Shown here piece by piece: positions 60,047-63,000 of a stretch of 64,000 nt of DNA. Location: NCBI GenBank assembly GCA_950097015.1, contig CATNEN010000031.1, positions 2,232,001 through 2,296,000 on the forward strand, given 5' to 3'. The notes beneath the pieces were generated by a model, which worked only from the letters and a program-made list of their open reading frames with translations, had not been told where the DNA came from and ran no database searches. The DNA comes from Macrostomum hystrix (taxonomy: Eukaryota > Animalia > Platyhelminthes). The position numbers and the translations under genes were made by a program. The first letter of the stretch is position 1. Every line of letters begins with the position of its first letter.

Positions 60047-63000
60047 TTAGTTGGTCTTCTCGCCGGCCACTGGCTGCTGGCTGGCAGCGGACTGGCTCTT
60101 GGTCTGGTGGGCGTGGAGTACGGCCACAGCCTCCTCAACCTGGAAAACAATCATGCGGTTTGGTATGATGGCTTCACTTGTTATTCATTGACATACTTTG
60201 TAAAACAAGCTTAATCTAGAATTATATAAAGCTTGATCGATTGTCCGCAGGGACAGGTGCGCCGTGCAGTTGAGCACAGTGAGTGTTTTTACTGGCACGG
60301 CGTGTTTAATCTGCAGTCCAGCACATTGCCGGGGTGTAATACTACAGTCGTTGGTTCAACAAGAGCGCTAATTTAAATTGATATAATTGTGCGAGCTTGC
60401 AGATCTCGACTGTGTTGTCAATAAAATATTCACAAGTAGCTGCTTTAAAAATGCGTGACCTATTTTAAAATAGCTAGGTCCTCACTTAGCCACATAGGCA
60501 ACCTACTAAATCTGCCGAGAAAATTTTGTTTAAATTGGTTCCGCCAACGCGGAAGTGAAGACAATTAAAATATAAACTCTATGTTAATGTTTTTATTAGC
60601 AATGTTCGCAGAGACAGGTGTGTCGGCGTGGCTGAGCTGCTTAAAATAAGTGGGCCGAATTGCGACACGTTTAATCTGCGATTCTCTTTATCTTACAGTT
60701 GTTGGTTCAACAAGGCCGCCACTCGTATTTTAATTAGGATTCGGACTTGTAGATCGCAACTGTGTACTTGCTAATTGTGATTAATTGTAATGTGTTGCCA
60801 ACTATTCTAAGCTTTAGAGTAGAGATGATAAAAATCCTTTGCAATTATTAGACAACGCACCTTCGATTTGAGCGCCTCGTGCGACTCCAGCATGTGAAGC
60901 AGTTCGGCATTGTCAATCTCCAGCAACATGCCAGTGATCTTGCCAGCCAGTTGCGCGTGCATCTCGTGAATGAGCGGGTACAGCCTCTCGCCAAGCATCT
61001 GCTTCTGCTCCTGTGGCGGGGCGGCGGCAAGCATGGCAGTTGTGAGCGGCTCCTGGGCGCCAGGGACGCGATCGTGCTGCGGCAGCTGGCCTTGAGCCTG
61101 CTGCATTTGGGCGGCGACAGACTGCTGGCCGTAGCCAGGGGCCACAACATTGCGCGCCATCGGATTGAACTGGTAGTTGGGAGCCGGCTTGCGCGGACCG
61201 CCATGCAGGCCCATCTGCTGGGGCGGCATGCCGACATTCGGACGGCCGACAGTGCTGGGCATTGGCCGGGTGGCGGCCATCGGCTGCTGGTTAGTGATCG
61301 GCCGCGAGGTCGGACGAATGGTGGCCTGCGGTACTCCAGTCGGGCGCTGGGCGCGAGCCGCCAGTCCGGCTGGCTGAGGAGGCATGGCGCTCACCTGGGG
61401 ACCAGTCGGACCAGCGTACTGGGCCGGTCGGATTGGCTGACCACTGGGCTGACCCGCGGTGCCCCAACGCTGCGGTGGTGGGCGCTGGATATTCATATTC
61501 ATACCGGCTAGCGGATTGTAGAAGTTGCGCGGCTGCTGCATTGTTGGCACAAAGTAGCCGGGAGCCTGAGCCTGCGGCAGGAACTGGCTAGGCAGCTGGC
61601 CCTGCATGCGATAGCTGGCCAGACGCTGCATGTACTGCGAGGCTAAGTGGGCCTTGCGGTCCTCTTTGCGCTGGGCTAGGGCCACGTACAGAGGCTTGCT
61701 AACTACAATCTTGCCGTTCATCTCAGTCACAGCTTTAGTAGCCTCCTCGGGCGCCACGAAGCAAACAAAGCCGAAGCCTTTGCTGCGACTGGTGGAGTCC
61801 ACCATGACCTGTAGGTCGTAGGGAATAAATGAATAATGAGCAAAGGTGCGAAAAAGAAGCAGAAGGCTATGGGAGGCATAGAGCGGTAGTTGCCTATCAG
61901 TTAGAGCGTCTGGCTGACGAAATAAAGCTCAAGGGTTTAATTCCCGACTCCACTTGAACTGTGTACTATAACAACTCTGCATTACTATAGTTCACACAAC
62001 TGTTAAATAGGTTACAGCATTAGCTGGGTAACTTTGGGTGGGTGCGGCGCCTCTTTTTCTACGGACTAAACAGCCGTACGAAGCCTTTAGATGCACAGAC
62101 ATAAAGAAAAATGGAAATACAAAAAAACTAAGCACTTCTCCCGCCTCACAGTGGCTTATAAAAATAGTGAAACACTTATGATATTTTGCTGAAACTGTGA
62201 GCGGAGACAGGTTCGCCAATCGCAGTGTAATCATATAAGTTGCAAATGACGAGTTTTAATCCGTTGAAACCCGGTTGTATCGGACAGTTTAAATGAACTT
62301 GCTGTTCTCTTCATGTAGCGATTGGCTATTTAAGTAAAGCACTGAGCACATGACAGAACTGTCCAATTATGGCGCATGTTTGATGTATATTTGTTAAGCA
62401 TTAAATTAATTTAAAGCTTTAGTATATTATAAAATAATTTAATAAGCACCAGAAGCTGGGCATTGTGAGCGGAGTCAGGTTCGCCAATCGCAAACATGAT
62501 AAAAAACACGAATGACGAGTTTTATTCCGTTCTTTCCCAGTTGTTTCGGACAGCTCTTATAAAGCAATAATGAGCCTGTGCATTTACATTTTAGCTATAT
62601 CGGTAGCCAAGTGTAAATGACACGAACTGTCCACTAAGAAACTGAAGCACACAATTTACTAAATTAATTTTGACGTAAACGTAGAGTTTTTTATTTTAGA
62701 AAGTTCTAAAACGGGCCTTTATAAATTCCATTTAAAAACTTTAACAACCCAGCACTTTTGAAAGGTGCGAAAAGTACCACTAATAATACTATCCAGGGAA
62801 GGGCATAAATAAGCACTCTGCATTCGAAACTAGGATACCAAGAGTTAAAAAAGAATAAAAACAGACTAATTCGTGATAAACGTATGCCTCACCTTAGCCG
62901 AGGTGATGTTGCCGAACGGGGCAAACTCAGCTCGGAGCTTCTCGTCATCGATAGTGTCATCTAGATTCTTAACGTACAAATTAACGCCAGTCTGGTAGCG

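Follow-up and report, generated by a model that had tools for sequence, protein, structure and literature searches.

Do two consecutive introns of a flatworm poly(A)-binding protein (PABP) gene encode small nucleolar RNAs (snoRNAs), and toward which ribosomal nucleotide would such RNAs be directed? The question is raised by a stretch of 64,000 nucleotides (nt) of the Macrostomum hystrix genome (contig CATNEN010000031.1, positions 2,232,001 to 2,296,000), hereafter the window, in which an initial annotation placed four paralogous box H/ACA snoRNAs, two per intron and sense to the PABP gene. These four elements, designated c1 to c4, are very probably four genuine box H/ACA snoRNAs located in two consecutive introns of the Macrostomum PABP gene. 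Their sequence, fold, complementarity to ribosomal RNA (rRNA), spacing, conservation and covariation are directly observed, and together these features carry the assignment.

All four units were found on the minus strand at the places proposed for them, two in each intron and in the orientation of the host gene, and each displays a hairpin–hinge–hairpin–ACA layout of 161-172 nt, measured from the first base of the first stem to the ACA. The first unit, c1 (62464..62632, 169 nt), which is recognized by its fold, geometry, target and orthologue in Macrostomum lignano (m1), carries the H box AAACAA at 62546-62541, the ACA at 62466-62464 and the two strands of the 3' pocket at 62525-62519 and 62480-62474. 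The second, c2 (62196..62364, 169 nt), is identified by its fold, by the orthologue m2 and by being the best guide of the four, with the H box AUACAA at 62280-62275, the ACA at 62198-62196 and pocket strands at 62259-62253 and 62212-62206. In the second intron, c3 (60603..60763, 161 nt) is supported by its fold, its target and its conservation in one M. lignano gene copy (L016); its H box AGAUAA lies at 60693-60688, its ACA at 60605-60603 and its 3' pocket strands at 60674-60669 and 60619-60613. The fourth unit, c4 (60242..60413, 172 nt), is filed as an H/ACA-type snoRNA from its fold, target and orthologue m4, and contains the hinge motif AGUAUU at 60343-60338, the ACA at 60244-60242 and 3' pocket strands at 60310-60303 and 60258-60252.

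Minimum-energy folding agrees with the proposed layout. Two main hairpins are predicted for c1 to c4, as well as for the M. lignano orthologues m1, m2, m4 and m3 (the last in its L016 form), along with small extra stems in the folds of c1, c2 and c4. A single-stranded hinge separates the hairpins in c1 to c4, and the ACA follows the 3' hairpin, which consists of a lower stem of 6-7 base pairs (bp), an internal loop and an upper stem; the ACA triplet comes after the lower stem in each of the eight copies (c1 to c4 and m1 to m4). The H-box consensus ANANNA is present in c1, c2 and c3, as well as in m1 (ACACAA) and m2 (AUACAA). No Cajal-body (CAB) box UGAG occurs anywhere in c1 to c4, thus classifying them as nucleolar-type guides rather than small Cajal-body-specific RNAs (scaRNAs). 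Additionally, the genome encodes a dyskerin gene, identified by its DKCLD domain.

The 3' pocket defines the likely target of the four RNAs. Its 5' strand reads UAAAAC in c1 and c2 and UUAAAC in c3 and c4, and its 3' strand reads ACCUGAC in c1 and ACCUGUC in c2 to c4, so that the strands T(A/T)AAAC and ACCTG(T/A)C quoted in the initial annotation are present in all four units. The distance from the pocket top, where the 3' loop strand begins, to the ACA is exactly 14 nt in each of c1, c2, c3 and c4, in line with the spacing originally claimed. The ribosomal DNA (rDNA) of the same genome was located, and its large-subunit (LSU), small-subunit (SSU) and 5.8S portions were delimited with Rfam; it contains GAGACAGGUUAGUUUUACC, the target segment. 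In a bipartite scan over all rRNA uridines, LSU U3309 in GAGACAGGU[UA]GUUUUACC was the top-scoring target of every copy, with the pockets pairing on both sides of U3309-A3310 (GAGACAGGU[UA]GUUUUA). Watson-Crick pairs on the two sides number 9+6 in c2, the best guide among the copies, 9+4 in c3, 5+6 in c1 and 7+4 in c4, and the observed score was matched by 0, 0, 11 and 5 of 1000 shuffled guides, respectively. Since four copies converge on one uridine, the contribution of chance is negligible.

U3309, a universally conserved uridine, is the second U of GGUUAG, which we take to correspond to E. coli position 2606, four nt after the peptidyl-transferase-centre adenine (E. coli A2602). We further take it to be yeast 25S Psi2975 (Psi, pseudouridine), the snR42 site; this correspondence, also drawn in the initial annotation, is supported, with the equivalence of the sites depending partly on a numbering of the yeast sequence that starts at Um2921/Gm2922/Psi2923. 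By offset arithmetic from the A-loop Um/Gm, the same nucleotide is presumably human 28S U4522, the SNORA26 site. In this yeast numbering, Psi2944, Am2946, Cm2948 and Cm2959 each fall on the correct base, in agreement with the published modified bases (PMC5699541). In yeast, snR42 guides Psi2975, a modification that is conserved in human and located within the peptidyl-transferase centre (PMC5699541; PMC8307265), and SNORA26, also named HBI-6, is the listed guide for human 28S U4522 in the older numbering (PMC5032015).

Two features outside the PABP locus were also observed. On contig 1, the LSU target segment occurs twice in isolation, away from the rDNA arrays (G000:C1:23265622-23265650 and C1:16058950) and once with a substitution; these copies may be rDNA fragments or orphan units. 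A full-length U1 small nuclear RNA gene (151.7 bits in Rfam) is located in the spacer of an 11.6-kb rDNA repeat (L013 9748-9910, minus strand, in G000:C17).

Comparison with M. lignano provides the second line of evidence. The M. lignano gene for the protein P0125 was taken with its introns (L014), along with two further gene copies (L015 and L016), and all three copies carry counterparts of c1 to c4, located in the same two introns. The orthologues m1 and m2 are located at L014:10193-10356 and L014:10556-10731, respectively, m3 at L014:12446-12588 and L016:7031-7194, and m4 at L014:12628-12791, with 71% identity over the whole length of c4. When the whole gene region was aligned with L014 by BLAST, the exons showed 79-85% identity, and outside the exons only the four RNA units and one block in the 3' untranslated region (UTR) aligned. 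The RNA units are thus the sole conserved intronic blocks between the two species, and nothing is conserved in intron 1. Loops diverge and pockets and stems are preserved, as had been claimed from the four M. hystrix copies, and so are the boxes. In L014 (12446-12500) and at the same place in L015, unrelated sequence stands in place of the 5' half of the m3 5' hairpin; L016 (7031-7090) keeps the ancestral form, with pocket strands identical to those of c3. This replacement is a copy-specific decay that followed the M. lignano genome duplication.

The pairing of the stems was assessed separately in two groups. No single consensus structure accommodated the eight 3' hairpins together (alignment A2), since the c3/c4 pocket lacks one base and thereby shifts the register of the lower stem, and the groups were therefore counted apart. 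In the c3/c4 group (alignment A5), 95.2% of the cells are paired, against 25-50% when the partners are slid; 6 of the 25 pairs have changed on both sides, and none of 500 shuffles reaches the covariation score. A further alignment of this group (A4) gave the same picture. In the c1/c2 group (alignment A3), 89.6% of the cells are paired, against 26-45% when slid, and two pairs have changed on both sides. The compensatory change pointed out in the initial annotation, ACAGTTG/CAACTGT versus ACAGTCG/CGACTGT, is real, with pair 6/66 being CG in two sequences and UA in two. The upper stems are unrelated in sequence between the two groups, yet all of them pair.

The same comparison bears on the claim that the four units are paralogous, which is clear within c1/c2 and within c3/c4 and is only suggested between the two pairs by shared motifs. 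Both groups have in common the 5' stem ACAGUU...AACUGU and the motif GAUUAAA, which lie outside the guide strands, and the CGGA/UCCG lower stem is shared with c1/c2 by M. lignano m3 only. These non-guide motifs suggest a common descent of the two pairs.

The 5' hairpins differ between the groups. In c3 and c4, the 5' hairpin contains conserved pocket strands, (C/A)GAUCU and UGAACCAA, with c3 carrying CGAUCU and UGAACCAA; both strands of c3 are identical in M. lignano L016:7031-7194, and the apical loop differs. The best match of this pocket is 18S U853 in UUGUUGGUUU[UC]GGA, with 10+3 bp and a distance to the hinge box of 15 nt in c3 and 14 nt in c4, a result equalled by 6-8 of 1000 shuffles; an alternative, 18S U209, offers 4+5 bp and a cleaner geometry. 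The c3/c4 5' hairpin is probably a guide for the pseudouridylation of U853 within the 18S UUGUUGGUUUUCGG segment, a tentative assignment that is less certain than the LSU target. The U run at U853 is presumably where human 18S rRNA has Psi814/815. Human Psi814 and Psi815 are described as adjacent, and Psi815 is guided by SNORA28.

For the 5' hairpins of c1 and c2, the rRNA scan found no target reaching 10 bp in c1 and one weak candidate in c2. The internal loop of these hairpins is asymmetric and not conserved between orthologues. On the basis of this unconserved loop and the lack of a convincing rRNA target, a guide role was rejected, and these hairpins probably serve particle assembly only.

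A number of observations weigh against the assignment of c1 to c4 as four genuine guides. The ANANNA consensus is not present in c4 (AGUAUU), m3 (AGAUUG) or m4 (AUAUUG) at the homologous place, and no perfect match occurs anywhere else in the hinges of these three RNAs; they are filed as H/ACA-type, with reservation, by their architecture, pocket and ACA despite the imperfect H box. The complementarity to GACAGGU-UA-GUUUUA proposed in the initial annotation, while correct in that U3309 is the best target for all copies, is incomplete: pairing on the GACAGGU side is interrupted in c1 by an A-A mismatch, which its orthologue m1 does not share, and c3 and c4 have only four contiguous pairs on the GUUUUA side since their pocket is one A shorter. 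Covariation in the c1/c2 group is slight, with 53 of 500 shuffles reaching the score in A3, because the c1/c2 3' hairpin hardly varies. For the second target of c3/c4, the choice between 18S U853 and U209 is ambiguous, and an inserted U in m4 spoils strict pairing with both. Moreover, the Rfam comparison recommended in the initial annotation matched no H/ACA family when the window and short intervals were searched at gathering and permissive thresholds, on the short intervals even at E values up to 10, and the matches seen were of chance level only, namely U6 (E 0.39), snR75, MIR444 and psRNA6 on the wrong strand. Owing to this result, c1 to c4 are best described as functional analogues of snR42 and SNORA26 rather than as demonstrable members of those families. 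The U6-like match, located at 62083-62186 on the plus strand and thus antisense to the host intron, scores 18.3 bits against a gathering score of 44 and is probably due to chance.

These deviations lend themselves to the reading, which we consider rather unlikely, that the family is real and not all of its four members are active, with c4 or c1 the most likely decaying duplicate, either unassembled or no longer guiding. The altered H boxes of c4, m3 and m4, the unpaired A/C at the top of the c4 pocket and the A-A mismatch specific to c1 would all be expected from such a decay, and copy-specific decay does exist at this locus, as shown by the m3 5' hairpin, the 5' half of which is replaced in L014 and L015 and intact in L016. 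However, c4 aligns with m4 from end to end while the flanking intron is unalignable, its stems still pair through changes such as U-G to U-A, and its pocket strands are invariant, and these three properties argue for continued selection.

A cis-acting role of the hairpins in the PABP pre-mRNA, for instance in splicing control or autoregulation, with an incidental complementarity to rRNA, is very improbable. PABP genes are known to be tightly autoregulated, and the hairpins are conserved only in the PABP host gene. Against this, eight independent pockets point to a single rRNA uridine at the canonical 14-nt spacing to the ACA, and loops that are free to diverge next to pockets, boxes and stems that are kept represent the signature of a trans-acting guide rather than that of a cis element.

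The restriction to one locus emerged from several searches. BLAST of c2 and c3 against the whole genome returned the local copies only, and a regular-expression search over the window and 10 kb upstream found no further copy. Neither this search nor the alignment with L014 revealed additional copies in the PABP intron beyond the window, which the initial annotation had singled out as a place to look. A genome-wide pattern of pocket plus ACA gave 54 matches, compared with 115 for a reversed control, and the closing stem was present only in c1 to c4, as judged by eye from the printed matches. Accordingly, the notion of chance hairpins or repeat-family fragments, for which the AT-rich introns and a real dispersed repeat nearby (around 61882-62050) might speak, is effectively refuted by these genome searches, which outside the PABP locus gave neither a BLAST match to c2 or c3 nor a pattern match with closing stem, by the conservation of position and structure in M. 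lignano and by guide scores above those of shuffled guides.

The assignment of c1 to c4 as H/ACA snoRNAs implies a sequence of events, and we infer from it that the RNAs are expressed, processed and bound by proteins and that they modify U3309. They would be transcribed within the PABP pre-mRNA, each would be packaged co-transcriptionally by dyskerin, Nop10, Nhp2 and Gar1, and they would then be freed from the excised intron by trimming. Exonucleases entering from both intron ends would halt at the outer particles; to separate the two RNAs of an intron, the 99-nt or the 189-nt spacer would therefore have to be cut at least once, failing which each transcript would give one RNA only. An endonucleolytic separation of the pairs is thus a reasonable assumption. 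Once released, the RNAs would work in the nucleolus, where the loop of the 3' hairpin would present LSU U3309 to dyskerin for conversion into pseudouridine. Since all four 3' pockets aim at U3309, the RNAs represent predicted redundant isoforms for one conserved modification.

A more far-reaching scheme, which we regard as quite improbable when taken as a whole, combines c3 and c4 as dual-specificity guides with a PABP-coupled fourfold set and a dedicated spacer-cutting activity. In this scheme, c3 and c4 may each link a pseudouridine of 18S expansion segment ES6 (the GGUUUUCGG run) with the LSU pseudouridine beside the catalytic centre; a coupling of its dosage to PABP transcription may have fixed the fourfold redundant set in the PABP gene; and the release of two RNAs from one intron would then require a dedicated flatworm spacer-cutting activity.

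The host gene was established by translating its exons and searching them one by one. The part of this cytoplasmic PABP (PABPC) gene that lies on the minus strand of the window amounts to its 3' three-quarters, with exon 1 lying approximately 2.3 kb past the window end. Exon 2 (62893..63674, minus strand), spanning part of RRM1 to the start of RRM4, is supported by protein and DNA matches: the encoded protein is 95-96% identical to P0125 and P0124 and 95% identical to M. lignano BOX15_Mlig009946g3, and the DNA is 84.5% identical to L014. Exon 3 (60861..61808, minus strand, 316 codons) encodes RRM4, the linker and MLLE; a search with its protein returned PABP matches only, with 89% identity to BOX15_Mlig009946g3, which identifies the gene as one from Macrostomum and not from a fly. 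The coding part of exon 4 (60047..60139, minus strand), comprising 30 codons and the TAA, aligns with L014:13263-13331.

Both snoRNA-bearing introns lie on the minus strand and have GT...AG borders. Intron A (61809..62892, 1084 nt), which holds c1 and c2, was delimited by sequence reading, and the junction of exons 2 and 3 across it is continuous in the homologous proteins P0124 and P0125; intron B (60140..60860, 721 nt), holding c3 and c4, was delimited by sequence reading and by the alignment with L014. In intron A, c1 begins 260 nt from the 5' splice site, the c1-c2 spacer measures 99 nt, and c2 ends 387 nt from the 3' splice site; the corresponding distances in intron B are 97 nt to c3, 189 nt between c3 and c4, and 102 nt from c4 to the 3' splice site. 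The G+C content is 41-49% in c1 to c4, 38-40% in the introns and 63.5% in exon 3, and a tRNA scan of the PABP introns found none.

Downstream of c2, intron A contains a dispersed repeat of approximately 170 nt (61882-62050) on the plus strand and thus antisense to the host gene; at least 250 candidate copies of it occur across the genome, with identities of 71-75%. Its 5' part appears tRNA-like by eye, and ARAGORN calls no tRNA in it; the repeat is probably an insertion of the short interspersed nuclear element (SINE) type. The shorter M. lignano intron lacks the repeat, and this absence accounts for the difference in intron length between the two species. Furthermore, a block of approximately 100 nt in the 3' UTR (59892-59987, minus strand) shows 73% identity to M. 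lignano L014 13449-13553; as the sole conserved non-coding block apart from the snoRNAs, it could be a regulatory element.

Among known systems, the nearest functional counterpart of c1 to c4 is yeast snR42, with which they share the H/ACA mechanism and the nucleotide predicted as target, namely the second U of GGUUAG within GAGACAGGUUAGUUUUACC beside the peptidyl-transferase centre. Contrary to this functional likeness, no sequence or covariance-model similarity to snR42 is detectable. The genes also differ in that c1 to c4 are intronic and present in four copies; most yeast snoRNA genes are independently transcribed (PMC3089462). Human SNORA26 (HBI-6) likewise shares the target site, by offset arithmetic, and differs in that Rfam gave no match between it and c1 to c4. 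Regarding the host gene, a parallel is offered by human SNORA55, the target of which is in 18S rRNA, unlike that of c1 to c4. SNORA55 is an H/ACA snoRNA in an intron of PABPC4 (PMC5423162), and thus lies, as do c1 to c4, within an intron of a cytoplasmic PABP gene; however, it is a single snoRNA, and c1 to c4 have no Rfam match to it. A continuity of host genes between flatworm and human is therefore not supported.

No published snoRNA catalogue or study of Macrostomum was found in the literature on Macrostomum and snoRNA, as judged by titles. The four RNAs are almost certainly real, ordinary new members of a well-known RNA class, which leave the knowledge of the H/ACA guide mechanism unchanged. 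They contribute four well-supported entries for macrostomid flatworms, models of regeneration and stem cells whose snoRNA set is almost unannotated, and they predict that Platyhelminthes retain the counterpart of yeast Psi2975, the pseudouridine adjacent to the peptidyl-transferase-centre adenine.

The arrangement of two snoRNAs in one intron, which the initial annotation had taken to be unusual, is real and is already known from rice and Drosophila melanogaster, where several snoRNAs, often isoforms with the same target, reside in a single intron of a protein-coding host gene (PMC2780460; PMC3089462). The Macrostomum cluster resembles these in carrying multiple snoRNAs, predicted to be isoforms, per intron of a protein-coding host, and differs from them in belonging to Platyhelminthes and in occupying another host gene, PABP. 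It thereby provides a clean case, conserved in two species, of intronic isoform clusters outside insects and plants.

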